Source of the DNA: Styela clava
Taxonomy: Eukaryota
Direction: 5' to 3'
Assembly (NCBI RefSeq): GCF_964204865.1
Contig: NC_135256.1
Span: 2,170,001 to 2,234,000 of the forward strand
DNA: 64,000 nt
Positions 17,495 to 55,911 of the stretch are shown piece by piece. Numbering within the stretch: the first letter of the stretch is position 1; each line of letters starts with the position of its first letter. The notes below the pieces were generated by a model, which saw nothing but the letters and a program-made list of their open reading frames with translations, was not told the origin of the DNA and did not search any database. Both the position numbers and the translations under genes were made by a program.

Positions 17495-17705
17495 ATGGAA
17501 CAGGAGATCGAACCAGCTGTGTCGGTGTCAGAGACAAACATAACCGATTCCGTTGTGCAAGACTTGAGCGTGAATGCCGCTGCAGAAGTCTTCGTGACAG
17601 CAGAACGTTCAGATATCGCACATGTAGACGAAGCATCTGTGATAGCAGAACAAGCGACTGTAACAGCTAGAGATGCCGTCATTTCTGCGGAACAATGCAA
17701 CATCG
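17495..17705 (+). CDS. NLR first coding exon: MEQEIEPAVSVSETNITDSVVQDLSV...ISAEQCNI (repeat module 1)
   Basis: AAAAATGG start context, donor G|GTAGGA at 17706, similarity to the downstream repeat exons. Confidence 0.8.
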
Positions 17706-20700
17706 GTAGGAGAATTTTTTCGGGAACTTATTCGGTCCAACTTATAAGGAAATACAAATAATAAATTCTACTTGCATCAGTTAATTGCAAAATTCAGGAC
17801 TTTGGATGTGGATTCGGGATCATGGTCCTGAGCCATTTAATAAAATCTGTTATTTTTATTTCCAGAAACCAGCATTACCGGGGCCGCTGTTCAAGATATG
17901 AGCATTGAAACTGCGAAAGATGTTTCGGTGATCTCTGAACATACAGAAATAGCGTCGCAGAAGGCAACTGTCCAAACAGTAGAGGCAACTCTCTCTGCAG
18001 CAAAAGCTCATATCTCGGCAGAGACTTTGCAACAAACCAACATAACTGGTATGATTTTAGAAGATTTCTATTTTTACGAAAAGGGGTCTTAAACCAGTAA
18101 TTCGCCACCTTTTTTGATATATTCCTTATCTTGTCTATTACTTCCTCCCTATTCCTGGAGATATTCATATTTTTGAAGGAAATTTAGCTGATGTAACTTT
18201 CCCTTTGTATGGTTTGATTGGTTGAAAAACTTTGGATAACTATATATTGCAATGATCCTAGAAAACTAAATGATATTAGTAAAATCGCACCAGATAATTT
18301 AAATAAAAAGTAACATTTCTGTTTTCTTCTATGTGAAAAACTCCTCCTTGGTTGGGAAATGCTGATGTAATCTACTTGTTTCTAGAAACCAGCATCACCG
18401 GGGCTGCTGTTCAAGATATGAGCATAGAAAGTGCGAAAGATGTTTCGGTGATCTCTGAACATACAGAAATAGCGTCGCAAAAGGCAACTGTCCAAACAGT
18501 AGAGGCAGCTCTCTCAGTAGCAGAAGCTCATATCTCAGCAGAGACTTTGCAACAAACCAACATAACTGGTATGATTGTTTGAAAATTGCTACTCAATTTA
18601 CAGAAAAGGGTTCCAGACCAGTGATATGCCATCTTTTCGATTTATTTTTTCTCTTGCCCATACCTTCCTCCCTATTCATGGAAACTCTGTTTACCACACT
18701 CGATAAATTTTCAACGGATATTTAGCTCATGCAACTTGCATTTTGAATTTTGCACGATTTGAATATTTGAAAAATTGTGAATAAATATGTATTGCAATAG
18801 TCATATAAATTAAACAATATCAGTAAAATTGCACTAAATTTCATTTTTTTTCTGAAAAATAACACCTCGGTTGGGAAACACTGGTCTATTGAGTGACTCA
18901 GAACTTTTTTTACTTCTGGAAAATCACTCAAAGTTATCTTATCCCGTACAAGTTTTCTTGTTACTTATCGATTTCAATCGGTAAGTGTGTTTATAGGTAT
19001 TTGTCTGTCTCGATATCTCACGAAAGCGAGGTTGACCCTGCTTCAAATTTTGCATGTGCATTCATCATATCTCGGACCGGAAGCCTACTGATATTGGATA
19101 AATTTTGTCGAATAATTACAGAGTTTTATTTAATTAGTGATGGAACACGTGGTGTCGCTATTGAGTCAAAGCGAATGATACACGCCACTAGATCGATAAG
19201 TCGGCGCACTCCGATTGTTATCTCGTTTGAATATGAATTAGTCAAAAAATAAAATTTTATTCGTCGTGTTTCTTGTGTTTTAATTATAAAATGTAGTAGT
19301 CATAAATTATAGCAACAATCAGCGCTGTGGATTCGTAGTCATGATATGATTGGAATAAACGTTTCTACCGTGCTCTAGTTATTAATCAGTAGTTTATTTC
19401 TCCAACATGCTTGAATACGCAATAGCATAAAAAAAAATCGAATAAGGTCAGATTGCAAAAACTGATTGTAACTTTTATTCGAGAAATCTTTTTTTTTTCA
19501 TTTCCAGAAACCAGTATTACCGGGGCCGCTGTTCAAGATATGGGCATAGAAAGTGCGAAAGATGTTTCAGTGATCTCTGAACATACAAAAATAGTGTCGC
19601 AGAAGGCAACTGTCCAAACAGTAGAGGCAACTCTCTCTGCAGCAGAAGCTCATATCTCTGCAGAGACTTTGCAACAAACCAACATAACTGGTATGATTGT
19701 TTGAAAATTTCTACTCATTACAGAACAGGGTTCCAGACCAGTGGTATACCATCTTTTTGATTTATTCTTTCTCTTGCCCATAACTTCCTCCCTATTCATG
19801 AAAACTCTGTTTACCACATTCGATAAATTTTTAAAGGGTATTTAGCTCATGCAACTTGCATTTTGAATTTTGCACGATTTGAATATTTGAAAAATTGTGA
19901 ATAAATATGTATTGCAATAGTCATATAAATTAAACAATATTAGTAGTAAAGTTGCGCTAAATTTTTTTTTTTGTCTGGAAAAAACTCCTCGGTTGGGAAA
20001 CACTGGTATAAACTATCGTACCTTCATAATTAAACTATATTTATTAAGTGACTCAGAACTTCTTCCATTTCTGGAAAATTACCCAAAACACTTCGAATTT
20101 TGCACGAATTGATAGTTGAAAATTTGTGAATAAATATGGAATGTAATAATCGTATCAATTAAACAATAATAGTAACTGTTTATCACATTCGATAAATTTT
20201 TAAAGAATATTTAGCTAATGCAACTTGCACTTTGGATTTTGCACGATTTGAATATTTGAAAAATTCTGAATAAATATGTATTGCAATAATCATATAAATT
20301 AAACAATATTAGTAAAATTGCATTAAATTTCTGTTGTTGTTTTTTTATCTGGAAAAAACTCCTCGGTTGGGAAACACTGGTCTAAACTATCGTACCTTCA
20401 TAATTAAACTATATTTATTAAGAGACTCAGAACTTTTTCCATTTCTGGAAAATAACCCAAAGTAATCATACTACGTAGAAGTTTTCTTGTATAATTTTTA
20501 ATTGGGCGGAAAATAAATTTTTAATCGTTATATTTCTTTGGTATTATATATAAATGTATTATCAATAAAGTATAGAAACGATCGGGGCTGTGGATTCGGT
20601 GTCTTGGTTTGGTTGGAATAAACGTTTCTACTGAGTTAAGTTAGTAATTTATTTCTCCAGCATGCTTGAATACGAAGGCATTCATGTGTCTTCGACGTAA

Positions 20701-23700
20701 AAAAAAATTCGCGATGAATCATAATATGTTTAATCGAAACATGATAAACCATGTTTGCAAGTTATTTTTTCTTATAATAACGGCTAAATAAGCCGTATGA
20801 GCCGTATTCACAGCTGTCTGGAAATGGTTTGTCAAATGTAGTTGACAACATAACAGCTAACCTTTCCGGCCTCATTATTTGAAAAAGATCTCATATGGGT
20901 TATTTGTGGAATAACTAAAGATATGAGTTCAATGTAGATATTGATTAAATATAAAACTTACTTTTCTAGAAACCAGCATAATCGATGCTGTTGTTGGAGA
21001 AATGAAGACAGAAAACATTTATGCCGAAAAAATATTTGTGCAATACGTTGTATCCGGTATGTTGGATTCATTTATCTTGTATAATTTATTCTACTAATTT
21101 CAGATAGGATTCCGTTATCATTGGTTTAAGTAATAAAACACACCGATGGGGGGATTGGTGTTAAAAAATAAGTATAATTATGTACAAGTTCAAATCAGAA
21201 ATGGTGAGGTTCCAATTTCAGAGAGTGTATTAATTAATATTGAATGTTGGTTCATATTTTTGTAGGAAAAGCTGAGACATCAGCCGACTCCTTAGCACCA
21301 TCCACATCGGGATGGATTGGTCAGGCACAGCAGACCCCAGTTCCGTCAATGGCAGCAGCAGATGATGCCGGGCAGGCAGTCACTCTTCGGGAAGAAATGA
21401 AGATTTCAGGTGATTTTGACTCCTAATTATTTGTTATTATTTCTGTTTCAGTTATATCAATTTCTTATCAGTCCGTCAGGGTAGAAAGATTGCGAACCAA
21501 TGATTCGGAGCATGGATAAAGTTTGCTTCAAAGTGAAACAAGTTTGCGAGTCCCAATGTGCTCTCTTTTCAATTTGGCCAGATCAGTTACCACGATACTA
21601 TCACAGATATTCATCCAGTCGTAGACGTGCCGTTCCAGCTGTTTATTATGCTTAGGCTATGTGAAAATTATTACTCAGTTTCATTGAGTGCATAACAGAT
21701 AATAGTTGCCTCATTATCAACAGTTCCTTCAAATTCTACCATAATGCAAGATTAAATAAAATTTTGTCATTTTTCATCTAGGTTCAGGAAAATCATTGAA
21801 CTTCTTCCAAAAACGTGAGTCTGGTTTTAGTTTTATATTTACATTGTGTGGAATAAAAACTGCCGATGCAGGTCTTTGATCAAATCTCAATTGTGGATCG
21901 CGGACTCTGCCCACATGTGGTGTTCGGATAGAGATAGACCGATAACAATACTTTTGACGACTTAGGGCCCATGAACCTATACACAGACTAACTCAAAGTA
22001 GCAATAGGTACCGGTACTAACATCCAATATCGAATTACAATAATTCTTGGCAATCCATCTATTTTATGTCTGTTACAAAAGTAGTTCGCAATATGTAACT
22101 CAGCATTTATTTCATGCATGAACAGAAGACTGCTTTTTGACCCAAATTTCAAAACACAGGATGCAAAAAGTAAAGCAGTGAAAGCCTACAGGCCGTCGCA
22201 AAATATGCTCGGCCTCTCCGTACGGTAGGCGGCGGTGATACTGCTGAGTGATCAGATAACGGTTTTGTTTAACGACGATTGTGCGTGAACGCACGTGACC
22301 GCGGATCAAGTGTTTACCAGATCTTTCGTGAATCGCACGTAACGAGATTTCGCTGTTGCATTTTGAGAGACAAGTTTACGTGTTCGTAAACCCGGCATTT
22401 TAATAAGTTTGACGAATGGGGCTCCAGAATGCACTTCCAAAAAGACGCATACTATCGCTGTATCTGCATTAGATGTTTTCATTCCTGGTGTGTTGCAAAC
22501 AGAACGTCAGTACGATTTTCTGAAATACTCAGAAAACTAATAAATACACAAATTTCAATGAGGATGAGGCAGGATCGTATCTTTTGGCTTACACTAGCCT
22601 ACATACTAGCACCTCAACACCTGACAGTTAAACAAATACAGACTGATACATTATGATGACAAATAACTTATAAAATTGCACATATAAACTTACCTGACGC
22701 TGTGTCATCAAGAGTCGTGAAGCATCAACCTGAACTATGAATCACAACAACCCGAATGAATAATTAGAAATATTACAATCACCAATTTCAGAAATATCAA
22801 TGACACACTGTTAATCATTAGTACAAGTAAATACTTGGTACAAACAAATATAAATACATATTATTAACACCAAGCACATAAGTCGCCCAATTATTTATAA
22901 AACCCAAAACAACACTAATTGGCCGATGTCAAAACTGAGGTCACATATAGATAAATTTAAGGCGCTTCGTAAGTAAGTGTAAGAAGATGACGCGCAGCCT
23001 GAACCCCTGCCTGTACACGCACTATGTTCAGGTTGTGCGCCATCTTGGTGCACATACTTCGGGAGCACCAAAGGTAATCATTACAAAAATTGATAAATTG
23101 TTTTTTGTAGTTCTTAGCTAAGTGTGATTTGAGGAAGAAAAGCAAAAATAAAATTAAAGCTCACTGATAAACGCCACTATTTAAGTTAATTTCGCACTTA
23201 AAGCATATACCCAGCGCCATATACAAAATCTTTGTTTGCATGGAGTTAACGACAAGCTGTTTATCATTTGCTTGTTCATCTGCTATACTCCGCAAAATTG
23301 CAGAATTCGAAAATCCAGGCCGGCGATGCAGAATGTTTTTGAAGCAGCCTGATTAATTCCAAGTTAGGCACACTCACTCTTCTAAAATACCGTTCATATA
23401 GAAGATGAAAATTCAAACTATTATTTGCCACCCCATGTGCATTCATTCATTACTGTCCGCCTGGTGTACATACTCCTTGCTTATTCTCTAGCGACAGTCA
23501 ACAAGGGATTAATTTCTCTAGGTGGCAAACAACGAAAATGTCAAATCAAAATTAGACAGTTATATCTTCGTTGAGTTGGCATCGAATTTTCTATTTTTTG
23601 ATAGAGGTATGCTAGATATTTCTGATCGTGAAATACATAGCTGATTTCGTGAAATACATAGCTGAAACTTTGTTTTGTACATTAAAATTTTGTGTCGTTA

Positions 23701-26700
23701 ATTAAAGATAGCAGAATGCAAATGCTGTATTTGAATAAAACACAATTTACGAAAACTAATTCGTTAAATCGGAAAGAAATTGGACATAAACTTTCATTCG
23801 GATTTTACCAATAAATAACAAATAAAAACAAATGATTTCACAAACATTGATATTAACATTGATATTATTGCCAGCTAACTTTAGCTTTCACATGTTTATG
23901 TTCTTTGCCATGTTTATTCTAATCGCATAGGAAATCAAAGAAATATAAATCAGAATGCCGGATATCTGGCATATACGTACAATTCGATGGCATGTCATAT
24001 TGCCAAAAATTGAAACTCTAAGAAAAATTCTGAGTTTTATTATACACAACATTCCGTTTATGAGAATTTGCACTATCTTTACTACCTTACTTCACTTCCT
24101 TGCTTGGAAGGTTTGCCTAAATGCAAATATTGAACATATGGAGAGAACATTAAGCAATATTTGTTGTATTCTCAACTATTTCCATTTACAACTATTTGCA
24201 GGAAAACATTTGGCCAAATTTAAAAAAGTAGTCAATAGCGATGCGTATAGGAAATCAGAGGATTCAGTTACTGGATTGTACAAGGATCAAAGGCTGGTTG
24301 AACCTGAGTTTAAAGCAAATCCACGCATAAGAGAATTGTCGCATTTCTTTGGAGGTGAAATGTCGCCAAAGATACAAGAATATCGTAAAGATGCCGAATT
24401 TAGTGTTTTGCTGGATAACATTAGCGAAGGGAAGTTTGTTACCATGAACCAATTGATCCAAAGTTTCCATTCAAAGAAAAATCGGTTAATTGCAATTGTC
24501 GGACAGGCCGGAAGTGGAAAAACGACATTTACAAAACGTTTAGTCCACATTTCGTGCGAATATTCATCAGGTTTAAAAAGATTGTTCAAGAATAGTTTTG
24601 ACGTTATTTACTTTGTCAACATTCGCGATCTCCTCGAATCGGATTCAATTACTGCGATGGAATTACTTTTTGGAGGTATCACTGATTTGAGTGAGGAAAG
24701 TCAAAAATACGGATATGAATGGATCATTGAAAATCAGGAAAAAGTCATTTTTTTCTTTGATGGATTAGATCAGGCGAATTGGTCTCTTGGCGGACATCAT
24801 CGCAAAATAAATCACAAGGAAAAGGCCATTACACCGACGGTTATGTACAACGTTTTCACTGGTCATCTTTTCCCAAACGTTCAAAAAGTCATCTCTTCTC
24901 GCGAGCATTGCATAGCTTCTCTCACTGGTGATCTTCGCCCCCAGCTAATCTACGCTTTGGTAGGTTTGGGCCCGGATGACGTCAAGCGGTTATTCATCAC
25001 ACTCCTTGGGGATATCGGACAACCGCAATGGGATCAGATGTGTTCAACCTCTCCTGCAATTATCCCTTTGTCGTCAGTCCCAGTATTTTTAATATACAAC
25101 GCCATCGTCCAGAAGTTCAACCCGAAAAATTCACCAGATACCATGACAGGAGTTATGTTGGAGATCCTTGATATTCTTCTGCAATCTCAGCATGTCAGAG
25201 ATAAGCAGGTTCTGCACAAGTTGAAAGAAATGGCATTCCGAGCAATGAGCGAAGGTCGGGTCGTTTTTACAAAAGACGAATTACTGAAGTTTGGAATAGA
25301 TCCGGATTCGATTCAAGACCTGGTTATCAAAGTTCCAGGCCGCACAAGGGCAAGTCATTGCTTGCTTGAAGGAACCCAACAAATATATTTTTCGCATCAA
25401 GTAATTGAAGAAAACCTTGCCGCCATGTTCGTGTCAGAAATGGGAGTTGGAGATTTTGAAGAATTCGTGAGAGAGTTCATTCATCAAGATCATTGGTCGG
25501 TTGTTCGCAAATTCTTGTGCGGAATTCTTCTCAACCCAGCTTTGGGAATAGATTGGCCTACACAAATGCTTCAAAGTAAGATATTGTTGCATTTAACCAT
25601 TAGTACAAAACTAGATTTAGTCTCGTATATATTAAAATCCCAGTTTGAAGTAATTAGGACTGGTTCGATTTGTGTCCCTTCCATGTCAGATATTGACAAC
25701 TGTCACGTTACGCTCATTTCAGCTAAGATGGCTAAACTTTCGACGCGCGCTATGTTTTTCAATAATACGTTTGACACGTTGGCATATTTGTGTGGCATTG
25801 TCAGAAAAAGATTATATATTGGTTGCAAAGTTGCGGAATAGAAATAGTCTGAAGTGAGTTTGTAATTGAGCAATATAACAAACATACCTGATTGATAGGA
25901 CTGTCGATGTAAAATAAATGTTTATTTGATCTTAGAAACTTCAGGGTATCATTACTACTGCGTTGGATTTTAAGTTTGAACGAGACAAAATCCAGCTTTG
26001 TACTACTACAACACGAGTTACAACAAAAAAATAGTAATGAAAAATTAAATTAATAGAAGTCGCTATTTGTAATTACTTTTTGTTTTGTAAAATTCAAAAG
26101 CAAAATTGTGTTGTGCAAAATATCATATTCGATTTAATGCATTATCACTTAAAAAAACTTTTTTACAGTGCATACCTATTTATCTGTATCAAACTAATAT
26201 TCATTTATTTTCAATAAATCGAATTGAAAACTTATTTTTCGTATGGAGTCATTCAAGGGTCGACAAGACATTTTCAAAGCCTGTTTTATAGTTAAAGATA
26301 AAAAAGCAAAAGAAGAAATACTGAGACGTAGCATGAATGAACAACTGAAGAAAAGAAACGATTCAACCGCTTTGATGGAATTGTTCGGAGCTTTATACGA
26401 GTCGAATGACGCTGAATTGATTCGATCCCACGTTCGTGTGATCAATTTCAAATACGCAACAATCAACCCCAGTGGAATGCTGGCAATATCGTCAGTTATG
26501 CGTCGAAGTGGAAATCTAAATCTTCTGCGTTTCTCTGAATGCGATCTCACGACGGAGCTATTTGATATCATGATTTCGAATCTGAAGGATTCCCAGCTCA
26601 AGGTTCGTTTATTTCAATGTTGCTAAAATTTATCAACACTGCGTTATTTTCCATTGTTACAATTAATAATGGCAGTCATCAGATTAACGGGAACACTACC

Positions 26701-29700
26701 TCGTTTGTCTTACTTTTGTTGACGCTTTTCATTTGTTCCATTTATTTTTAGTTGTGAAGGGTTGCATAGAATCATAGAATATATTTAGCTGGTCTCGAAC
26801 CGTCGTCACCACTTGTTCAGTTTAATAATTCAGGTCTTTATTTTATTCGAACATTTAATTTTCATAGACAGCTTCTTTTATTCACACATTTCATCAATTA
26901 ATATTGCAATCGATACAATACTCCTAGGCCAAGACAACTCATCTATGGATGGCGCACAATAAAATATACGTGACTGATGTAAATAAGATCGATTCGTTTT
27001 GAATCCATCACATAGCACCGCTGCATTTTTTATCAACTCGATAAAATTATTTCAGTTTGTGATTCGCAGAACTGCGATGTTTGTTGGTGTTGGATTCTGG
27101 GTTTTATTTTTAATTTCCTGCTGTCTACGACCTTCGAATTATGGAAATAATTGTAACTGCAAAACCTTTCGAGATAGAAAATATGAAATCGATTGTCAAC
27201 CCGTAGTGAGGAGTCATTTTAAGAATTTTGTTTAGTAGCACTGAATTGAATATTGTCATTATGTATACATAGATCAAGAAGTTTGTCCTGAACAACAGAT
27301 TCAATGCTGAATTATTTGCATCTGTTACAAAATTCACGGAATCTTACGTTGATGAAATGGTGTTGGAGAGTTGCATGGGAAAGGATGAAGTTGGAATCAT
27401 GAGTAGAAGCGTTATTTCTAAGAAAGTGAGTTGAAGTTACTAGTTAGGATACTCTGTCTAAAAGCATTTCAGACTTGAAACAAGTTTGACTTGTTGGCAA
27501 AAACTACCAGTATAAAGGGGGAGGGAGATGAAATCAATAACCTTTGCCCAACTTGAAAAAAAATTCACGATTCTATTTTACTTGTCATGATTGTAGAGCT
27601 TGCCATATCCCAATGCTAATTTTTTAGCTTATTGACAAAACGAAATGACATAATATTTAAACTAATAACTCATTTGCACGGTGTTTTATCATTTACTGTA
27701 GGCCTCCCGCTTGGCGTATTAACGCCCGATTAAAGTAAAGATGAAGATATGAGAAGCAGATAAGACTTTGGTGTTTGCAAACCTTTGCATATGCAATCCG
27801 CAAACCTCATCAATATATAATAGGCAATGCATACATAACAGTGGTAAAACAACAGAATGTAGATACAGTCTGAGGAGATAGACCAAATTAATCTGATTGC
27901 GAACTTTTTGTAATGTTCTACCCGCATTTATGTTCCGAATAAAGTGAGGAGTATTATATGGAATCAGACTTTCCGATCCAGCATTGACTACGCAATTTAT
28001 CACACAAGAAAGAGGTGAATAGCAAGGGGTTCGAAGCTGAGATATTTAACCTGCTCCGCAAACATACTAAATGCACAACCACTAGCTTTTAAATCGGTAT
28101 ATTTGCTGATGTTGCGCTGAGGTCCCCATACAGTAAAATATTTGAAAAATTTTCATTTTATTTTTATAATTAAATAAACAAATTGTCTGATTCAAGTGTT
28201 TCAATTTTTTTAAATGATGAAAAAACTTGATCTATCTTCATCTAGGTGTTTATCAACAAGCTAACTCTGAACAATATCAAGATGTCAAAACAACTCAGCA
28301 TTGAAACTGGAATCGTTTTTTCCAAGTATAATGTTGAATGTCTGAGTTTGTGGAATATTGACTTCATGAGAGAGATTCATCTTCGTAATTTCTTGAAACA
28401 TTTTGGGAATGGTAAAGTAAGTGAATAACTTTGTAAAAATATAAAACGAGAACAAAAGTTGTGTTTAAGTTGATTGGGTTGAGTTAAATTGTAAGAATTA
28501 GTTTTGTTTATAATATGTATATAAATTATGTTGTAAGTAACTATTCATATTATAAAGTAAGTAAATACCTTTGTAAAAATTGTTTCTATAAAACGAGAAC
28601 GAAAGTTTTGATTAATTTGTGGATCTATTATTTCAACCCATAGCAAGGAGTCATTTAAGAAATTCTGTTTAGCAGCACTGAATTGAATATTTCCGTTATG
28701 TTTACATAGGTCAAGAAGTTTGTCCTGAGCGATAGATTCAATGCTGAATTATTTGCTTCTGTTACAAAATTCACAGAATCTTACGTTGATGAAATCGTGT
28801 TGAGAGAGTGCATGGGAAAGGATGAAGTTGGAATCATTAGTAGAAGCGTTATTTCTAAGAAAGTGAGTTGAAGTTACTAGATACGTTGGCTAAAAGCATT
28901 TCAGACTTGAAACAAATTTGACTTGTTGGCAAATCCTACCAGTTCTTTCTTGAATAGAGATGAATAACATCAATAATGTTCACCAGGCATAAAAAAAAAT
29001 AGATTGATTCTATTATGCTTGGAATTTGCGTGCTTCGATTTTGCATAGAATTGAAGTGCTTCAGAACAGAGCCGTTAAAATTCTCTATGGTTTTTCCGCT
29101 CTTTTAAACCTCAATATGATATATAATAAAACCAACATTCTAAAGCTTGAAGATATTTACTAATTAGAAGTTTGTAAGCTCATGCACAGATATCAAAATC
29201 ATTGCCTGCCCACAGCATTTGATGACTATTTTACCAGACAAATTAACATCCATATATACAACACACCATCAACACTCTCTTTTTATTTACCACGTTTGTC
29301 ACGATCCAAAACTCAAAATTGCCTCAGATATAAGGAAGTAAAAGGTGGAATGAGATACCAAGTGAGTTAAAAAGCATGCCTCGCCATCTATTCAAATATA
29401 AGTTAAAAAAAACATTTAATATCCCAATATATATTGTAGAATGGAATACTTGTGATCAACCAAAATGCCCTTATCAATTTTGATAAGTTTCATGGTTTAA
29501 CCGTAAAAATCCTAATTTCTACATTTGAATTAATACTGTAATATGCAATGCTGCAATGACACACTACTGCACTACGGTACTCCAGAACTTCAATGATTAT
29601 CAAATGACGGTTTTCCAATAAATGTATTTCTAGAATACTCGAATTTTGCCTTATTTAGGTACCTGGTGTTTTGCTTGTTCATTCCTGTCATTCAGTGTTT

Positions 29701-32700
29701 TTTTTACTGTTTTTTCAATTTTTATAATTATGTTTAGGTTGGTTTATAGTATTTATATAAATTATGTTGCAAGTCACTATTCATATGGTAAAGTAAGTAA
29801 ATAACTTTGTAAAAATTGTTTGTATAAAACGAGAACGAAAGTTTTGATTAATTTGTGCATCTATTATTTCAACCCTTGACGAGGAGTCATTTGAAAAATT
29901 CTGTTTAGTAGCACTGAATTGAATATTGCCGTTATGTTTACATAGGTCATTACAGTAAATACTGAATAAACTTAATCTATCTTTATCCAGGTGTTTATCA
30001 ACAGGATAACTTTGTCATATTCCAATATGTCAGAACAACTCTGCATTGAAACTGGGATCATTTGTTCCAAGTATAATGTTGAATGTCTGAGTCTGCAGCA
30101 TGTTAACTTGAGAGAGATTCATCTTCGTAAATTCTTGAAACATGTTGGCAGTGGTAAAGTAAGTGAATAACTTTGTAAAAATGTAAAATGCGAACAAAAC
30201 TTGTCATTGTGTTGATATTATTTGAGTTAAAGAATTACCGTAGGTTTGTTTATAATAGGTTTATACATTAGGTTTCAATCACTATTCGCATTGTGAAGTA
30301 AGTGAATAACTTAGTAAAAATTGTTTCTATAAAACGAGAACAAAAGTTTTGATTATTTTGTGAATCGATTAGAAAAAAAAAAATTCGGTTTATTATTAAT
30401 GGCATAACACATAGGTTGCAAGTCCCTATTTACATTATGTAGTGAAGAGCATTATTTTAAAATGGAAATTTAGAAAGAACAAAATGGTTTTGCTCGCGGC
30501 ACACTTAGGATATAAAAAAATTCGACACACCTGTAAAACATAAAGTTAGCTTTAAACAAATTTATTCTGTAAATGGTAATGTGAAGTGTGCACTTGTTTT
30601 GAAAAACTTCGTCGGTTCCATTTCGCTTTTATAAATTTCAGTCAAGCAGAAAATCCATGTTCACAGATCCATGGATATTCAAATGTCTAGAATATTTTGA
30701 TAGCTTTTGCAACGATGGTTGAATGGAATTTGTAAGCAGATGGGGGTGTCATAGATGTCGTACTTGTGTTTTCTGTCCTACTTAACCAATTTAGACATCC
30801 AGACAGTGGCGTATCTAGGGTATGGCAGCGATGGCTCGTGTTATAGGCGCCGTTTGGACTTAGGGGCAGAAACGCGATCGTTTTAATCTTGTAATGTTTC
30901 AATAAAACTTGAAAATAACTGAAGCTCAAATTTTTTTGATGTTTAGCATTTTCATGAGCGATCATCCTTTTGGGTGCTTTTCACTGACTAAATCCAGCTT
31001 CCTGTTGCAAAGAAGATTGTTGATCTGATTGACAATAGAGCAGACAGTAAATGCAATAAGTGGCTTTTTTAGAAGGCGAATTCATCAGCCAAGAACATGT
31101 TACTTCTTCGCCATTTGCTAATTTTTCCTTGAACTAGTTACCACTGCTCATTGCACGATTATCTCGGGGCAAAAAAGGTCCATGACTGTTCTGAAAATAT
31201 TTTGAACCAAGCTTGGTGATTTCTGCTCTCATTCCATTTGACAAAATAGATCTTTCCTGTAGTTTCACCGAATTTGTATAAGTCCGAATCGCGTTTTAAA
31301 ATAAGGTCCGGCACATCAGATCCAGCGTTCTTGTTCACGTTAATAAATCCTTTTGTAATTGGGTAATCTCAAGGACTTTTGACACCTTTTATATAAACAT
31401 TTTTTCCTTCCCGTTCAAACGTGCTAGAATTACCAATCAAGTAAGGGTTTTTATGCCCCTTTTTGCGAGATGCTGCCAAATCGTGACAATAATTCTCTCA
31501 ACCTTGTGTAGACAGATATGTTTTCCTTTCTTGAGATCATTATTAACTCAACTATTTCCCCCGTTCTACGCAACGTTGGGAAAAGCTAAAGGATGCCATC
31601 CAGTTGTTTTCAAGAGCCGAGGCCGAAACTCGTTTGAATTCTAGAACAGAAGCAGTATATTGAGGGTTGAACGCAGTAAAACTAATAGAGTCGTAAATAG
31701 TACTCCTGTCTGCTTGAGAACATGGTTGAAAAAAGGCCGAGGCGGAATAAAAGAATGGCTGGTGATGCAGGTTTATCGGCGACTGAAAAAAAAATAGAGC
31801 GCGTCATGAAAACAGTTCTCGAAAGAAATGATTGACCGTTTTTCTCGGTTATTCGACATCAATGTCAAGTTTGGATTTTTGTTCGATGTCTAAAGACTTT
31901 GTTGTAGCCGTGACTGTGTACACTTACAGTGGCTGTGTGATAACTTAGCTTCTGTTTACAGTGACGACCTTGACGGCAAGCAATTATATGGATACATTAT
32001 TGATCGTAAAATGTTGATTTCAAGTAGTACCAGCGTCAGGTTTTTGCGACCTGAAGATCTTCTTACCACCATAGTTGAATATGGGGATGAAAGCGTATTT
32101 CCCAATCTCCGGATAGCTTTGCAAATTTTGCTGACAGTGGCAGTATCCATAGAAAGTTGCGAGCGATCGTTTAGTAAACTAAAATTAATTCTGTCATACC
32201 TTCGATCCTCAATGAGCCATGAAAGGTTGTGTGATCTAGTATAGAGAGGTGAAAAAAAAATCAAGTTTTGATGAAATCACTGACGAATTTACGTCAAGAA
32301 AGGCACGAAAAGTACCATTCTATTAAATAATTGAATTACTTATTTTGTATATTGCGTGGTCGAGAGCAATCAATTTCATATAAAGAAAAAAGCGAAGTGG
32401 GGGACGCATTTTTATACACATTATAACATAACAATACAATTAAAACGTGACGATCACCTTCACTATCGACAAGGCAAATGCAAAAATATTATCAACCTTA
32501 CACCGGATACTCAAGTCTCACCCGTTGTATGCATGCATATGTGCAACACAAATAGCTTATTTTCTGAAATTCCAAAAAGCTCCGCGGCACATCTGAGAAT
32601 TTCGAGTGGCTAAAGGGTAAAATTAAATATATCCGACATCGCAGTTTACAAATCTCTCGCTCAAATCCCATTTTTATTGGCGTAAGCTTCCCTTCTCACC

Positions 32701-33936
32701 CGGGTGTAATAACTTGGTAAGCAATGCCGAACCAGAAAGATTTTGGTCCTTCCTAAATGTAGTAATACCTTGCATAACAGTATCTGCTTGCACAGAGCCT
32801 TGTTATGATTAGGAGGTTGTAACACGCCATATAAAAATATTTGAGTAATGCAATGTTATAAAAGATTGGTTTATTCTTACAAAAATAACAAAAAGGTCAA
32901 CTGGCATTTCATGGTTAATTGAACTCACTACATAGGAATGATGAAACTGACAGCTTATTCCGCTATGATATCAATAGTTTTAATTTATGAACCAGGCACC
33001 GAACAAGTTGCCGGGCAAGCAACCCCCAGGCCTAGTATGTAAAAAAGCTATCAATTTCAGGTTTGTATACAGTCTGTGAAACTTCTCACTCTCTGGATGA
33101 CGTTACATTTAAGGGGTTTGAACCCGATACCAATAAAGTTAATACTAAGCAGTTAACCACAACTACACCATTGCGCTCACCGAACCCAATGATTATGCAG
33201 GGCATTCCCCTACTTCTAAGCTTGAGTATGGTACATGGGTATTTCTCATGACTATTATATTCGTCAATGTTATTATTCATTTAGTTACGGAAACTCGATG
33301 TGGGCTTCAATGAAAATCTTGGTGCTGAGGGATATGCAGTCACAGGTATTATTGTGTCACAATGTGAAGTAGAGATTGTTGGAATGCAAGGCTGCAATCT
33401 GACAGCGAAGGAAATGATAGCATTCAAGGAGAATGTTCGGGATGCAAAGGTACGAATATCTAAAAAAAACATTGATTATTCAAAGATTAGTGTAATGGAC
33501 CAAGCTAGGACTATATGTAATTGATTGTATTGGATCTGAAGTGACTGTGCCAATATGTAATTTATATCGAGTGACAAAAATCAAACTGCATTGAGCTATT
33601 ATTGAAGTAAACGCCCCATATCAACAGAAGCATTGCCTCATAGTAGCAATCATTTCTTCTGTTCTTCCTCATTCAAATTTGCAAATCATGATTTTTTTGT
33701 CTGATTAACAAGTTTCATAATTTTTTCAGATCAAATATTGGGATCTGAGGGGCAACAAACTCGACAAACTTGGAGATGAAGGATTATCTACAATCAGTGG
33801 AATTGTTCGTCAATGCCAAGTGCATACATCGGTGTTGACGAGATGCCACTTCGACGATGATCAGTTGGAAAGATTCAAAGCATTGATTGCTGATACCGGC
33901 GTTCAGTTAGAATACCAATACCTTTTTCGAATATAA
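17495..33936 (+). CDS. Spliced NLR-type (NACHT-LRR) receptor with N-terminal beta-rich repeats; proposed join(17495..17705,17866..18048,18386..18568,19508..19690,20970..21056,21266..21409,21782..21814,24202..25575,26292..26602,27273..27425,28246..28416,28710..28862,29991..30158,33285..33449,33730..33936), about 1241 aa
   Basis: Every proposed internal junction is GT..AG with a pyrimidine-rich acceptor. Phases chain without stops (phase 1 through the NACHT exon, phase 0 for the LRR exons). NACHT and LRR motifs are present. The 3' end is uncertain. Confidence 0.82.
17866..18048 (+). CDS. NLR repeat exon, 183 nt, phase 1-1 (ETSITGAAVQDMSIETAKDV...QQTNIT)
   Basis: tttccag| acceptor, G|GTATGA donor, open frame. 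Confidence 0.88.
18386..18568 (+). CDS. NLR repeat exon copy 2, 183 nt, phase 1-1
   Basis: ttctag| acceptor, G|GTATGA donor; 10 nt differences from copy 1. Confidence 0.88.
18961..19227 (+). mobile_element. HINE family 1 copy inserted in an NLR intron
   Basis: Same termini as 6389..6782; absent from the paralogous intron copy at about 20489. Confidence 0.8.
19508..19690 (+). CDS. NLR repeat exon copy 3, 183 nt, phase 1-1
   Basis: tttccag| acceptor, G|GTATGA donor, open frame. Confidence 0.88.
20970..21056 (+). CDS. NLR short repeat exon, 87 nt (ETSIIDAVVGEMKTENIYAEKIFVQYVVS)
   Basis: cttttctag|AAACCAGC is the same exon start as the repeat exons; donor G|GTATGT; phase 1-1. Confidence 0.8.
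21266..21409 (+). CDS. NLR low-complexity linker exon, 144 nt
   Basis: ttttgtag| acceptor, G|GTGATT donor, phase 1-1, lies within ORF 21244..21426. Confidence 0.75.
21782..21814 (+). CDS. NLR 33-nt mini-exon (GSGKSLNFFQK)
   Basis: ttttcatctag| acceptor and C|GTGAGT donor, phase 1-1. Confidence 0.65.
24202..25575 (+). CDS. NACHT (STAND NTPase) domain exon with HD1/winged-helix region
   Basis: Walker A IVGQAGSGKT, Walker B VIFFFDGLDQ, sensor-1-like VISSRE, WHD motif FSHQVIEENLAA; tttgcag| acceptor and A|GTAAG donor inside ORF 23955..25841. Confidence 0.95.
26292..26602 (+). CDS. NLR HD2/first LRR exon (...ELFGALYESND...LNLLRFSECDLT...)
   Basis: ttttatag| acceptor, AAG|GTTCGT donor; LYE helical motif and LxxLxFxxCxL. 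Confidence 0.88.
27273..27425 (+). CDS. LRR exon A1, 153 nt, phase 0-0 (IKKFVLNNRF...VDEMVLESCMG...)
   Basis: acatag| acceptor, AAA|GTGAGT donor; duplicated at 28710. Confidence 0.85.
28246..28416 (+). CDS. LRR exon B1, 171 nt (VFINKLTLNNIKM...VECLSLWNIDF...)
   Basis: tcatctag| acceptor, AAA|GTAAGT donor, LxxLxL patterns. Confidence 0.87.
28710..28862 (+). CDS. LRR exon A2, 153 nt
   Basis: Near-identical paralog of A1 with intact splice sites and frame. Confidence 0.85.
29035..29430 (+). mobile_element. Decayed 3' end of a CR1/L2-clade LINE ORF2
   Basis: Translates to VLQNRAVKIL...NILKLEDIY*LEVCKLMHR...LPTAFDDYF...HIYNT...WN, typical of post-RT C-termini. Confidence 0.65.
29991..30158 (+). 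CDS. LRR exon B2, 168 nt
   Basis: ttatccag| acceptor, AAA|GTAAGT donor; paralog of B1. Confidence 0.85.
30804..32330. mobile_element. Decayed hAT (Tip100/ZMYM1-like) element in an NLR intron
   Basis: CAGTGGCGTATCTAGGG end; TTF-type zinc finger remnant on - (about 30930-31140); hAT dimerisation domain FPNLRIALQILLTVAVSIESCERSFSKLKLI on + (32011-32244). Confidence 0.8.
33285..33449 (+). CDS. LRR exon (LRKLDVGFNENLGAEG...VGMQGCNLT), ribonuclease-inhibitor-like
   Basis: Canonical LxxLxVxxNxxLGxxG; catttag| acceptor, AAG|GTACGA donor. Confidence 0.9.
33730..33936 (+). CDS. Last LRR exon (IKYWDLRGNKLDKLGDEGL...); stop TAA at 33934-33936 if not spliced further
   Basis: ttttttcag| acceptor, LxLxGNxLGDEG motif. 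A short alternative terminal exon after the acceptor at 34294 is possible. Confidence 0.8.
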   Translation: MKYWDLRGNKLDKLGDEGLSTISGIVRQCQVHTSVLTRCHFDDDQLERFKALIADTGVQLEYQYLFRI

Positions 33937-43770: not shown

Positions 43771-46575
43771 CGGTTAAAAATAGAGGTATTTATGATTAGT
43801 TGAAAATGTAACATTTGACAGTAGTACTAGGCTACTACTATCCTACTACTAAGTGCATTTTATTTTAGGCTTGTGCAAGGTGTTTGTTGAAAATACATGT
43901 ATATTGTGATTTCCTATGCCAGAGATGGGCAACCCCTGGAACGCGTGCCAAATTTGAAATATAAGTGTTTTTCATGGTAATTTATAATTCCTGATAATTT
44001 CAGGTAAAATCATCAAAACTATCAGTGTCTCCTTACGGCTGAATGACATTAATAGTATTAATAATTAAAGCTTGATAGAGAAAATCGGCTTTCGGAAGTG
44101 TGCATACAACTGGCAGTTCTGGCTTAATGACCCACTACATTTAACGCACGTAAAGAGGTTGATTAATCTGGCCAATCGCAAACACACTCGACTGTTTGCT
44201 AAAACATAACAATTTGCTAACAAAGTACCAGTGCTGGTGCATGAGATTTTAATGCCTCAAATTCATGAATATTATTAATACATCTTTGGTCTGTAAAAGT
44301 ATACTGCTCATACCCTATAACTCGAATTTATTGTTCGAACCCCCAGCACGGAAGTTAATATTATTCTTCATGCCAATATGGCTGAAACAAGAAGAAAAAA
44401 ATCAAATGGGTGACGTGATGAAAACTTTCTCTCAGTTCAAATAATTTTCAATTTTTGGTAATTTCAACTAGTAGTTATTATTGTAGTGCGTTATCTCAGT
44501 TTTTAGCTGCAACGGCCCCCATGAAATGAGTTATGTTTGAACAGATTGTCATTTATTTGAGTATTTCTCACACCAAATTCATTGAAATGTTTTATAACCA
44601 ACGCAATTGGTCTCATTACATTAATCCATCACAGTTATAAATGTACAATTTGACAAAACCCATATTTTGTTAGTTTATAGACTCCACGATTCAGGGCGGC
44701 AACTAAGGACAATTGTACGGGGAAAGTGGTCAAGACATTTTGTGATGCCTATCCACATCATGTGACGAATGTAAAAAGTAAGACTCTACGTGAGTAAGTC
44801 GGTTAGTAACAGGACTAACGGAGTTCAGAAATGTGACAAAATGTAACATTCGTCATATAGTTCTCATATAAGTCCGCACACATTTTGTAAATAAATTTCT
44901 ATACGCCCAAAATACATCATATGTATTCTTATCAAAGCGTTCGATAAACGGACTGACAATATACGCCATTAGCATGATTTTTTACAATACAAGACGTTTT
45001 CATGTTTACATTGAGTTTTATTATATTTGTTCGAGTCGCGGGAATAGGAAGACTCACGCAATAAATCGATAAAATGACGTGATCAACGCATTCGACTACC
45101 TATTGGATTGTTCTTAACACCACTGAGCAGTTTATAATACAACGGCGATGCTGGATTAGTTAGATATGTTCAGCTTATACCTCGTGGTTTGCCATTTATT
45201 ACGAATGTCAGATCAGCTTTTGAGTGTTCAACGTGGAGGCTGTTTGTTCAGTTTTTTGTTTGTTAATTCATCTGATCGAAATGTTTCGTCACAAGTTGGA
45301 TTATTAAAATAAAAGAACTTGTTTAAAGCCATGCGCATTTACAGATAAGGTGAATAGACTCATCTTCTGGCGCAAAGTTTCGAGCGCCCCTTGGAATGCC
45401 AAAGGCTACCGAAACTATATAGAATGAAGGTTGTGCGTTATGCGTCAGAAAATTCTCTGTGTGAAGAAGCAATAAAACCAAACACAACAGAAATTTAACG
45501 AATTTCAAAATCGGAAATTTGCCGCAATTACGCGTTCGTTAGAAGATCCGACTTTTTTGGTGTATAATCTAATGTACTTTTCTGTCGCATAGTATTTAAT
45601 CGATGACAACGACGAGTATTTAAAATGTCTTTCTATTTTAATTTAATTGTGCTCATGGTAACTAGCGGTTGCCATTTACTTGTCGACTTACGACAAGATA
45701 AAAGCATTAGTTTTTTATAATGCCACAGCAATCTGCAAACATAATAATGAGAGGATATATTGCGCGATTATATTCAGCTTTGATAGATATTTTTTGCGAT
45801 CTTGCGAATTTGTTATCGCCGTTAGAAAAAATCCTACTATCTGCTATAAATTTCCAGAATGTACAACTTGATTTAGTACTCATTAAAAATATATTTGAAG
45901 TATAAAAGTAAATCAAAAATACATATTCATCGCTTTGTTTGCTTCACTATTAATTTAGTTGTGATGATTTTAATCTGCAGTTTTCCGTCGGAAATCCGCA
46001 AGTGAGTTGTGAAATCCAATCGTTTGATCAGGCGACGCGTCACCTGTTACCAAATTTTCGAATAGTAAATTGCTGATCTGATAGTTGAGTTTTCGGATAT
46101 ATGCCCAGTCCTACTCCTCAACCAGTAATTATTGTCTCGAATTTTGTTATGTGAATAAATTTGTCTTTTATATGTTTTATGTAAATTCCAACTTAAATTG
46201 TAACTTGGCTGATAGTTAAGTTTCGCAAAACGTTTGCAGTCCGCAGTGAATTTCTGGCTTGTTGCGGACTCATCCAAACGCTCCGCGGACTCATTGGAGA
46301 CCGCGGACTCGGGTTGGGAAACACTGCAATAGATCAATAAGAGACTGTTTTCATTATGAAACAAATAAGATTAAATGTTCGAAAAAGGCGCGTTTAAAAA
46401 AAATGTAATTCACTAGATCTAAAACATTTTTTTTTCATGGACTCTGGGTTAGAACGCTTCCCGAACTGAATAGTCATATACGCGTCCTGGGCTTAGTAAA
46501 AAGAGTAAGATTTAGCTGTCAACAATCTAATTGCTCATTTACAAAGAGCGTTGTATTCAGAAATTCGACGTGCTT

Positions 46576-47037
46576 GTCTCATGAAATGTCATTTCACAAA
46601 CATGCACTTTCAGTTGGATAAGATTATTTCAAGAAAATGTCGTCTCATGAAATGTAAGTTCACAGAAATGCACTTTCAGCTGGATAAGATTATTTCAAGG
46701 CAATGTCGTCTCATGAAATGTAAGTTCACAAAAATGCACTTTCAGCTGGATCAGAATATTTCAAAGCAATGTTGTCTCATGAAATGTCAGTTCACTGAAA
46801 TGCACTTTCAGCTGGATCAGATAATTTCAAAGCAGTGCCGTCTCATGAAATGTCAGTTCACTGAAATGCACTTTCAGCTGGATCAGATAATTTCAAAGCA
46901 GTGCCGTCTCAGGAAATGCCAGTTCACTGAAATGAACTTTCAGCTGGATCAGATTACTTTGAAACAACGCCATCACACAAAATGTCAGTTCACAGAAATG
47001 TACTTTCAGTTGGATCAGATAATTTCAAAGCAGTGCA
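46576..47037 (+). repeat. Minisatellite, 7 x 66 bp, derived from a BTB-domain motif
   Basis: Unit starts recur every 66 nt (46581, 46647, 46713...); one frame reads SHEMSVHRN[AV]LSAGSDYFKAML. Confidence 0.9.
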
Positions 47038-48014
47038 TGCCTATTGCTGGAAACACGATGACGGTGAAGATATAACATCACTATCCTTTTATCACTACAA
47101 CTCACGTTGATCTCCCACATGACAATTCGAAGCGAAAGGGAAGAGCATACACACTAACCGCTAAAAACTATTGACAAAATCGAAGGACAGTTGAGGTCTG
47201 GAAAGACGTCGAAGAGGGCTTATGGCAATCTTCAGGCGAAAACAAGCATTTCACCCGATCAAGCTCGAATGCCTGTTGATAAACCAAGATACAGAAAACA
47301 GTGCGAAAACGTTCAACGATGTTAGTGACTGCCAGAAGATCCACTTGGAGATGGGCCTTCAGTAAATACATTTGGGGATATATTACCGATATGGACAGGT
47401 AAATGAAGGCAGGCTTCAGTGTGAAAAGCAAGCCATGGAGAATAGGGTCAAGCGGGAAGTAGACTGAACATTTATTCGATGTACGATTCTAATAATAACC
47501 ATGCTCTCCTAGTTACTGACAGCAATGGAACAAAATTTAGGAAATACCTTGTATGTCAATAGAATTACTTCGAGTATTTTAGGTGTCTTCATGCAGCGTA
47601 ATTAAATATATTCACTATCAAGCGTTAAATTCATGTATGTAAAGGTTTGTGTCGCACATTGTTATACGCCGTCAAATATAGAACCTATAGAAAGTTAGGC
47701 CAAATGAACATGATTGCAAAAGTATTGATTACTTTTAGTCAAAACTAGGTTGTCCGAGCACCCGAGGAATGTAAACTCGACCTATCAGATGGCCGGATTT
47801 CGCATGTGCAAAGGAGCTTTTAGAAGAGTGTCATTTTGAAAGAGATTTTTTGATTGCTTTGGGCACTAACAATTTCACCCGAATGTGCCACGAATAAACG
47901 TTCGACTTTGACACTTGCACATAATTCTGTACCAAAATTTAAATGTATATCATCAATTAATTGATGCTCATATTTATTCATTTCATTCCGTTGTAGATAT
48001 CATCCACAGCAAGT

Positions 48015-52222: not shown

Positions 52223-54960
52223 CCTGATTCAGACGATCAATCTTGCCCAATTTGTATACCCATTTTTATTTAAGTCTAAAGACCCCAAAATTTATCAAAT
52301 ATATCGATTATTATATATCATTGCAAAGGTCTTTTCAAGATCTATACGCTACATGTCACTGGAGGACCGTAAACGCGAAGCCATTCCGATGACGTCGCTT
52401 CAAACGCGGAAAATTGAAGAGAAAAATTTACATGCCTGGTATTCAGTCAACTGTGAACAGCGTATTCTCGCATCTTACTTGTTTATGTCTTTACAGTTCG
52501 CTGCGCTTTGTTACTACGATTCTGTCAACACAAGACTGGTGTGTTTTGAGCGAGTAATACGCCTGTCGTGAACGAAATTGTCATTCGGCTCAGTTGAGTC
52601 TGAGCGATCGATTAGACCTAACGCTGCCTTATCGTCTGTGATAATATCACTCCCTTATATTTCGTGTATAAAAACATTGCTATTTTGCTGGCATAACATA
52701 TATTTTATTTACAAATACGATAACGGACAAACAAAATAACAAAAACTGTACATGAAATTATAAAGGTTACAAATACGATAACTGAAAAACAAATACTTTA
52801 CATAAAATTATAAAGGTTTGCTCTGTGAAGGTATCACATGGAAGAGAAAGGGCGTGATTATCGCCAAAATTCTTTTTTTGTGTGCCATTGCGTAAAGCCA
52901 CATAAAGATGTACGCCACATTCTCGACAAATTACGCGCGATCTCGTAACATATTTAGGGCCACCCCTTCTCTGCTTATGGGATTCTTTCACAGAGCAAAC
53001 CTTGCAGATTCGCAAGGCATTTTGGAAAGACGGCAAATGAAGCCCTACATTTTGGAGTCTTAGTTCAAGTTGTTCACTAGAGCGACGTGGTGGCACGCCA
53101 CAGTCCTGAAATCACCCAACAATTTCGTGACCAAATCTTTTCGCCATTCTAATGGCACGAATTTTTTCCTTTCATTTTCAGGCAAAATAGCCTTCGCCAC
53201 CACGATACTGTTATGTAACGCTACTTCGATTAGGTAAAAAAAAATACGTCTGTACCATGTTTTGGAACGTCTTCCAATGTTATAGTACTTTCGCATAGCG
53301 TCATTGAAATCCACCCCGCCCATATAATTATTATAATCATGTAGAAGAGGTGGACATGGCATGTCTTGCGATGGCATGCCACGCCCACCCCTTCTTTTCA
53401 CAGTTCTGAGTTCCATTGGAACATCTGGCTCGTAATCAGGCTTGTGAATTGTTGATAAAAAATATACCGGCCTGTTGTCAAGCCACGATTGACAGAGAAG
53501 CTCGTGGGCCATTGTCCATTCACTGTCACCTCTTGTATGAGTTCTTTTAGTAAGTACAACTTCGCTTGGAAAGTTTTTTCTTCCCAAGCGCATTGTACCA
53601 CATGCATAAACATTGTTTTCGTATAACTTTCTAAAAAGTTCTGTTGACGTATAAAAGTAATCTACATATAGGAACGGATCAATTAGATCGTATACCACCC
53701 TAGATGCTAATCCCACTTCTTGAACTCGTGGATCCTTGCCAGTATAAATTTGGAAACATACCCTGTTTTCGATTCTGCCAAAACCCAGACTTTTATTCTA
53801 AATCTAACACGTTTTGAGGGTATAAATTGCCGAAAGCTTATTCTACCTTTGAATGGTATCATTGATTCATCAATTGCTATATATTTGTCTGGGGTATAAA
53901 CTGAAAGTAACGTGGGTTCCACAAGTTCAAGAAGTGGACGAATCTTATAGAGTCTATCTCTTAGTGGGTCCTGCGGCGATGGGGATTTGGATTCATCACA
54001 GAAGTGAAGGTATTTCCATAAAAGTTTGAAGCGATCTCTTGGTATTATTTTGTTTGGTGTGGGCCAGTCGAAAATCCAGTTCTTCTTCTGCCAGTACATG
54101 GTCAATTGTGGCATTCTTATTAGGCCCATGATAATAATTAGGCCAAGGAATGCTTTCTCCAGAAGCTGCAATCTTCCGCTCGGCATTGAGATTTGTCATC
54201 TCGACAATTAGGGCGATTACATTTGCGGTAATAAATTGTGAAAAGACATCCAAACTTGTAGTGTGAGGGGGAAATCGTTTTTGTACCCCTATTCTCTCGG
54301 AAAATGGACGCATCACACGGGGAGTTACCACCTTCTGCCAGTTTAGTTGTGGACCTGATGGGGTTGTGGTTCTTGTTCTTCCTCGCTGTCGACCTGCCAC
54401 TGCTCTTCTTCGACGGCTTCTCTGCGAACCACGAACATTGCGGGCTGGCGCATTCGAAGGGCCGGGTACGTCTGAATCTGAGCTCTCCTCATATTCGCTC
54501 TCAGGTTGTGCCTCTAATACATCGACTTCGTCCCCTGAACTTCCCATTTCACCAATGACTTCATCGTCATCCTCTATTTCGTCTAAGCGTCTCAAAGCTT
54601 CAATAGAATCGAAAAATCGTCTAGTCGTCATCGTTGCAAGTAATGTAATACTTTGTTATAAGTTTCTCATCATTTTATCTTGACTCGTAAACAATGCTCT
54701 GCTTTTTACGAGATGAGCACCCGCTGTTTTACTAAAGCTAAATGTGTCGTCAATCAATAGTGTCTTGCTGAGTGTAATGTCTTCGCTTCATCACTTTCTG
54801 ATGTCATATGTAGGCCATTGTTTATTTTGAGGTCATAGAGAATTAGTTTCCATGTTCGTGCAACAATAGAACGAACATGAATCATGTAAGGACATTCACG
54901 GCATAGAGCCACATTTCCGTCAGTCGCGCTAGATAGTGCCTTTTGCCGTATATATGTCAT
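52223..54960 (-). mobile_element. piggyBac element with frameshifted PGBD4-like transposase (ATG 54631 to about 52830)
   Basis: IDESMIPFKGR, YVDYFYTS, YNNYMGGVD, C-terminal CKVC...CREC; TTAA|CCTG end at 52219-52226; other TIR not found. Confidence 0.9.
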
Positions 54961-55872: not shown

Positions 55873-55911
55873 AAAATATGTAGAGGGAAACCAGCAGCAA
55901 GAGCACACAGG

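Follow-up and report, generated by a model that had tools for sequence, protein, structure and literature searches.

NLRs are defined by their N-terminal signalling domain as much as by NACHT, and the locus described here raises the question of what occupies that position in an animal NLR that carries none of the usual effector domains. The locus lies in a stretch of 64,000 nucleotides of AT-rich eukaryotic DNA from Styela clava (hereafter the window), where five short open segments are placed between canonical splice signals on the + strand (17495-21056), upstream of an exon that encodes a NACHT domain. The original prediction took these segments for a repeat array that replaces the death fold and may assemble as a beta-solenoid or amyloid. 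We consider it slightly more likely than not that the repeated modules are real coding exons, that a NACHT-leucine-rich repeat (LRR) receptor of S. clava carries them at its N-terminus, in the effector position, that they belong to a species-restricted exon-array family growing by tandem duplication, and that the array is a rod acting as a homotypic platform.

Exon array upstream of a NACHT domain

The five segments (e1-e5) together encode 282 amino acids (aa; 70 + 3 x 61 + 29), and the predicted gene continues through a linker exon and a mini-exon into the NACHT exon and the exons that follow it:

17495..17705, + strand: exon 1; ATG, 13-aa leader and 57-aa module of the first-exon type (70 aa in all); donor G/gtagga; ends in phase 1
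17866..18048, + strand: exon 2; 61-aa A-type module, a symmetric phase-1 exon of 183 nucleotides (nt); top match of the search of the species' own genome
18386..18568, + strand: exon 3; 61-aa A-type module, 183 nt; contained in NCBI model P0033
19508..19690, + strand: exon 4; 61-aa A-type module, 183 nt; contained in P0033
20970..21056, + strand: exon 5; 29-aa module of the short C type, a homolog of the 33-aa modules found in other S. clava NLR subfamilies; contained in P0033
21266..21409, + strand: exon 6; 48-aa linker exon rich in S/A/G/Q/P, based on the sequence and on models P0033, P0002 and P0036
21782..21814, + strand: exon 7; 11-aa mini-exon ending in ..FFQK and the first base of an Arg codon; donor GTGAGT
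24202..25575, + strand: exon 8; pre-NACHT segment, Walker A-containing NACHT, putative winged helix and putative beginning of HD2
27273..33933, + strand: downstream putative HD2/LRR exons up to the stop codon of the NCBI model, located by tblastn of P0001 on the window

All eight exons (8/8) have canonical AG/GT sites and phase 1, each ending one base into a codon of which the following exon supplies the remaining two bases. Because every exon is phase 1, the array stays in frame at any number of modules. Exons 2-4 are 92-93% identical in protein and 93.5-95.1% identical in DNA. A recent tandem duplication accounts for exons 3 and 4 together with the intron of each: the intron copy at 18598-18825 is 95% identical to the one at 19718-19945. 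Exon 1, the module part of which is 46% identical to e2, matches the module profile with E 3.9e-22. The fifth segment is of another kind: e5 is related to the long modules over the first 16 residues only (hhalign probability 44%, E 2e-4), and it aligns with 33-aa N-terminal modules of other S. clava NLR subfamilies, which are phase-1 exons as well. The original prediction had spoken of five related modules; this is right for e1-e4 and has to be amended for e5, which belongs to the separate 33-aa type.

Downstream of the array, exon 6 is 85-87% identical in DNA to its two copies in the paralog at 0.75 Mb. Exon 7 differs from that of a paralog by a 6-nt indel in an alignment in which the donor is conserved, and this indel, being in frame, points to coding constraint. 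Exon 8 contains a NACHT domain (PF05729, 71.9 bits against a cutoff of 26.7, E 7.5e-20) with the Walker A motif GQAGSGKT, and is 100% identical to P0001, a 921-aa NCBI model named 'protein NLRC5-like [Styela clava]'. Past NACHT, matches to NOD2_WH (21.1, cutoff 23.1), NLRC4_HD2 (24.2, cutoff 33.1) and LRR_6 (20.5, cutoff 23.4) follow each other in the right order with scores below threshold.

In the Walker A NACHT and in the putative NOD2-type winged helix, NLRC4-type HD2 and C-terminal LRR exons of the ribonuclease inhibitor type, as well as in having an N-terminal region at the effector position, the gene resembles other animal NLRs (NACHT-LRR, NOD1/2, NLRC3/5-like). Unlike these, it has no CARD, PYD, death domain, DED, BIR or TIR at that position; it carries the 282-aa array of one exon per module, followed by a disordered linker, and the number of modules differs widely between its paralogs. 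Pfam searches of the exons, the NACHT-LRR part, the models P0032, P0033, P0035 and P0038 and the full-length paralogs, inspected up to E values of 1-10, returned no CARD, PYD, Death, DED, BIR or TIR match, just as had been predicted from the letters of the DNA. In these searches the exons were used singly and the spliced proteins were database entries only; nothing significant was found in the modules, nor in the full-length paralogs beyond NACHT-related domains. With a Pfam match for NACHT and no known domain in the modules, the claim of an animal NLR with a repeat array other than a death fold at its N-terminal effector position has held up, and the replacement of the death fold by the array is supported.

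The module family and its gene models

The modules share the signature 'ET[NS]IT...TNI[TD]' and come in lengths of 33, 61 or 68 aa, each being one symmetric phase-1 exon. The 68-aa type equals the 61-aa type plus an exact 7-aa insertion, and another variant carries a 7-aa internal duplication, while the long and the short types have only the first 16 residues and the exon design in common. A composition count agreed with the earlier description of the modules as proline-free and rich in A/T/S/E/I/V/Q: proline is absent and glycine scarce (each 61-aa module has one G and one N), V/I/L/M account for ~23% of residues, and the mean hydropathy lies above the Uversky boundary (0.49 vs 0.45). The modules are under purifying selection, with a ratio of nonsynonymous to synonymous differences (pN/pS) of 0.31 among 21 non-identical 61-aa modules, and the hydrophobic positions do not vary even between module types of just 41-55% identity.

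A search of the S. clava genome with a single module recovered 83 exon copies, and a profile built from 14 sequences gave 103 genomic exon matches of the 61-aa and 68-aa types. Since these matches reach E 7e-31, the modules are related far beyond chance. No further module copies were found in the window. In all, 101/103 matches fall into 11 loci (contig C8 has nine of them, C2 and C3 one each), every one of which is opened by a module of the exon-1 type, and at 10 of the 11 the array lies on the same strand as, and directly upstream of, a NACHT exon 77-89% identical to that of the window. One of the two outlying matches is a divergent module on C14, 6 kb upstream of a 62%-identical NACHT.

The remaining copies stand apart from this arrangement. 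The eleventh locus, at C8:2.29 Mb (L014, G000:C8:2286000-2295999), is probably a truncated remnant: exon 1 is accompanied by a half-module and a single divergent module (78% identity), and neither linker nor NACHT exons follow. The other outlying match is an orphan half-module on C16 (L017:9776-9973, - strand; G000:C16:18422832) beside an LRR/transmembrane gene on the + strand, with no NACHT or further module exon within 10 kb.

Array size ranges from one module on C2 and C3 through three in the window to ~16 at C8:2.36 Mb, where a three-exon unit is repeated. An extreme case is found at G000:C8:997606-1111621 (+ strand), where at least 36 nearly identical 68-aa module exons extend over ~115 kb upstream of the NACHT at C8:1143202, which has an in-frame TGA; an N-terminal array of giant size, runaway expansion within a pseudogene or a faulty assembly could each explain it. 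Exon-level duplication is not confined to the modules, because the 48-aa linker exon is also tandemly duplicated in paralogs (three copies in P0002, two in P0036). In a further paralog model, P0005, the N-terminus is a duplicated segment unrelated to the modules and fused to the same NACHT family; given the precomputed assignments PF27073 and PF27046, this segment may be transposase-derived.

The short type has a wide distribution of its own: at least 150 exons of the 33-aa ETNITDSQIQEV.. module lie in arrays upstream of the NACHT exons of other NLR subfamilies, with a unit spacing of ~1-3 kb, at the following places:

G000:C5:107302-289000; C1:24.46 Mb; C1:31.36-31.77 Mb; C13:4.01 Mb (loci L020, L021): arrays of the 33-aa module

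In protein space, the module profile, searched against 1.84 billion representative proteins, matched six proteins of S. clava, all from these NLR loci, and one spurious bacterial repeat protein. Neither this search nor a six-frame profile search of the genome yielded a non-NLR carrier of the module, and the domain is undescribed in the literature searched, PMC8662601 included. The module family is real, more extensive than the original prediction had described, and restricted to S. clava. The safest statement is that it constitutes a new N-terminal repeat domain, specific to this lineage, in a clade of NLRs, assembled one exon at a time and expanding by tandem duplication; in at least three subfamilies and with hundreds of exons, a chordate lineage has filled the NLR effector position with a species-restricted repeat that matches nothing known. 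Near-identical tandem repeats whose copy number shifts by unequal recombination are also a feature of fungal NLRs with highly internally conserved repeats (WD40/ANK/TPR, HET-E/NWD type). The fungal repeats form a C-terminal sensor of known folds, whereas those of S. clava are N-terminal and each has its own exon.

Whether the array and the NACHT-LRR part still belong to one gene in the window has to be weighed against the public annotation. NCBI places two genes at the locus, P0033 and P0001. The former (XP_077970321.1, LOC120337407, 220 aa) corresponds exactly to spliced e3-e7 and then reads through the e7 donor to a stop; the latter starts at an ATG inside the e7-e8 intron and runs to 33933. 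Moreover, a search of the protein collection for transcript-derived fragments, with P0033 and P0034 as queries, yielded nothing but NCBI/UniRef models. All of this weighs against a single gene, and the NCBI split would agree with a locus at which the repeat exons and the NACHT-LRR part have come apart into a module-only 220-aa protein (LOC120337407) and a truncated NLR, or at which one of the two parts is decaying. The same explanation could draw on the paralog at 2.40 Mb, which is likewise split (P0032 and P0004), on the in-frame stops in several paralog NACHTs and on the orphan N-terminal remnant without NACHT at C8:2.29 Mb. We nevertheless regard it as unlikely, because every exon is open at the locus, the e7 donor and the e8 acceptor are canonical and conserved, and joining e7 to e8 yields paralog protein sequence: the predicted join ..FFQKR/KHLAKFKK.. 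is the junction sequence of P0002 and P0036. Intron read-through accounts for the N-terminal end of P0001 and the C-terminal end of P0033, and neither end occurs in the joined models P0002, P0003, P0007, P0035 and P0036. In the paralogs P0003, P0004, P0007, P0035 and P0036, NCBI itself has joined modules, linker and NACHT into one protein.

Repeated exons often make automatic gene models fragment. From exon phase and the paralog models we infer that e7 is spliced to e8 at this locus as well, so that a single NACHT-LRR gene with an N-terminal array remains the preferred reading. How unstable the annotation of the module arrays is can be seen from an older NCBI model of LOC120337407 (P0039, presumably from an earlier assembly), which differs in its N-terminus and tail around two modules. 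There is a practical warning in this, namely that these genes get split in two by automatic annotation.

Fold and possible signalling role of the array

The lines of evidence on the fold of the array disagree with one another, and all of them are weak. One lead comes from the short modules. AlphaFold2, run on the single sequence of P0025, drew residues 155-456, its ten 33-aa modules, as uninterrupted beta structure with a predicted local distance difference test (pLDDT) score of 50-68, compared with 20-30 in the NACHT part. A structure search with this array model recovered beta-solenoids only (Z 17.1 to 9.3), including SufD/SufB-type helices (Z 17.1-15.4), an autotransporter (14.1), curli CsgA (13.9) and a beta-helical antifreeze protein (12.0); the model superposes on 9h78_B with Z 17.1, on 1vh4_A with 16.5, on 6bea_A with 14.1 and on 8c50_A (CsgA) with 13.9. 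Foldseek, run with the same model against the PDB, returned nothing at E <= 0.001. As to sequence-based leads, phmmer gave weak matches to synthetic pentapeptide solenoids (E 0.002), and the ESM Atlas feature neighbours of two 61-aa modules included several beta-helix families at chance-level scores; the neighbours of P0034 (<= 0.83) are leads only, and those of P0038 are at chance level at 0.76. Unlike the beta-solenoid families, among them the pentapeptide-repeat proteins, the S. clava modules show no sequence membership, and the 61-aa modules of the window were not modelled as beta.

Membership in the pentapeptide-repeat families (PF00805/PF13599) was considered and rejected. Pentapeptide_4 reached 29.5 bits where 38 are required, no single stretch being significant by itself, and this sub-threshold match carries no weight because an unrelated minisatellite open reading frame (ORF) in the window scores the same (28.9 bits). 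This negative control, at 46551-47075 on the + strand, consists of a 66-bp unit repeated seven times (89% matches) and is open as a 174-aa ORF.

Several points weigh against extending the solenoid to the array of the window. AlphaFold2 on P0032, which comprises seven A-type modules, gave a mean pLDDT of 36.7 from an alignment of 8 sequences, with long low-confidence helices and coil; the beta-solenoid model concerns the other, 33-aa module type and was built without an alignment, so that near-perfect repeats may have been over-regularized; and a helical heptad unit would account just as well for the indels of exactly 7 aa that separate the module types. An ESMFold2 homotrimer of P0033 (residues 1-139, three copies) gave an ipSAE of 0.00 with a fold pLDDT < 50, and counts neither way on self-association. 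The beta-solenoid that had been predicted thus has weak, indirect support from the model of the 33-aa array, with Z up to 17 against solved beta-helices, and none from that of the window's own 61-aa type. That the array of the window is a beta-solenoid-like rod is accordingly a tentative proposal, for which we put the chances somewhat short of even.

The periodicities that had been read from the modules fared similarly. Although the eye picks them out, lags of 5 and 7 residues were not significant over the whole module (family-wise P 0.55-0.98), and the hand-picked segments gave P values of 0.02-0.36; a 7-residue unit is backed by the exact 7-aa indels. A coil length of 15-17 residues inside the modules was not significant either. 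An 11-residue amphipathic periodicity of the synuclein/apolipoprotein-like kind was tried and discarded, there being no power at 3.67.

The absence of significant internal periodicity, the pLDDT of 36.7 over seven modules and the fold pLDDT < 50 of ESMFold2 would all suit an array that has no defined fold and serves as an intrinsically disordered, acidic spacer or tail rich in S/T/A/E/Q, which may tune autoinhibition, solubility or condensates and is free to vary in length. The copy number of 1 to > 36 among paralogs is in keeping with such a spacer, as is the lack of homologs outside S. clava among the 1.84 billion proteins. Set against this are the composition (no proline, scant glycine, ~23% V/I/L/M and a hydropathy of 0.49, above the Uversky boundary of 0.45), the pN/pS of 0.31 together with the invariant hydrophobic positions across types 41-55% identical, which argue for structural constraint, and the related 33-aa arrays, which model as ordered beta. 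We therefore hold disorder to be a doubtful explanation, though a serious one. A more remote alternative is that each module is one long alpha-helix and that the array is a helical or coiled-coil-like rod, bundling on NACHT oligomerization like the coiled-coil domain of plant NLRs. The helices drawn by AlphaFold2 span ~53 residues per module and are parted by ..QQTNITETSITG.. junctions, the indels between module types measure exactly 7 residues, and ~44% of the residues favour helices (A, E, Q, K, L and M). Those helices have a pLDDT of only 30-55, however, and ~46% of the residues are unfavourable to helices (T, S, I or V). Hydrophobicity spectra revealed no helical periodicity at 3.5-3.6 residues (power 0.4-1.1 vs ~9 by chance), the lag-7 autocorrelation was r 0.14 (family-wise P 0.98) and the 'd' positions are mainly polar; the trimer prediction lacked an interface, though that run is evidence neither way. 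Taken together, this makes a helical rod quite improbable. If the array should prove disordered or helical, it would still be a clean case of rapid domain invention via exon duplication in an immune receptor family.

The original prediction also proposed that the array may form an amyloid and thereby recruit a partner with a matching motif. In signalling of the fungal and bacterial type, an N-terminal motif templates its cross-beta fold onto a separate effector with the same motif, which, according to 10.1101/2020.01.06.895854, is often encoded next door. With HET-s/HRAM, PP, sigma, BASS and RHIM, the S. clava array has in common a non-globular sequence N-terminal to the nucleotide-binding oligomerization domain (NOD) and a possible beta-solenoid character, so that a logic of proximity-induced assembly is plausible; the proline-free composition and the solenoid leads point the same way, and the module-only proteins of NCBI could in principle be partners. 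Unlike the known amyloid motifs, which are short, G/N/Q-rich and shared with an effector, the S. clava modules measure 33-68 aa, stand in long arrays and have no partner that we could find. The search for kinases, caspases, pore-formers or other non-NLR proteins with the module, by profile in the 1.84 billion proteins and in six frames across the genome, came back empty. The module-only models P0032, P0033, P0034 and P0038 end in intron read-through or are fragments, and resemble pieces of NLR genes rather than free partners. A short G/N/Q-rich motif of ~20-40 aa, of which (I/V)Q(I/V)G is an example, was not found in the modules, which are 61 aa long with one G and one N and occur in arrays of 3 or more; the HET-s unit, according to PMC4518210, has 21 aa in two repeats. 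The RHIM tetrad is absent from the exon translations, as the original prediction had said. Given the lack of a non-NLR carrier, the 61-aa modules in arrays of 1 to > 36 and the lack of a G/N/Q-rich core, the recruiting amyloid found no backing, and we regard it as highly improbable.

Our preferred reading of the array as a homotypic platform would work as follows. Tandem duplication of units that each consist of an exon and its intron makes the arrays longer or shorter, between 1 and at least 36 modules per gene. The array itself would be an elongated, non-globular repeat rod, which is more likely to be beta-rich and solenoid-like than a coiled coil. NACHT oligomerization would gather several such rods, and the clustered rods may stand in for a death fold by serving as a platform for homotypic assembly or recruitment. 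That NACHT-driven clustering would activate the array is suggested by analogy with every other NLR N-terminal domain. One can speculate further that the ETNIT-module arrays are beta-solenoid rods which polymerize or template each other once clustered by NACHT, and that free module-only products, arising by alternative termination or exon skipping, could join them; the result would be, in a chordate NLR clade, a solenoid or prion-like signalling platform of an origin independent of death-fold filaments, of RHIM and of the fungal and bacterial amyloids. We think this version a long shot. If the array is indeed a self-assembling beta-solenoid, animals, like fungi and bacteria, would have evolved polymer signalling without a death fold downstream of NOD receptors.

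Mobile elements in the window

At 53060-54631 on the - strand, a piggyBac-type transposase (PF13843, E 7.5e-35 and 1.9e-24) extends across overlapping ORFs; because it is split over ORFs in different frames, it is probably broken. At 55041-56775 on the + strand lies a retrotransposon gag ORF (PF03732), which is followed by a second long ORF with protease/reverse transcriptase-like sequence.

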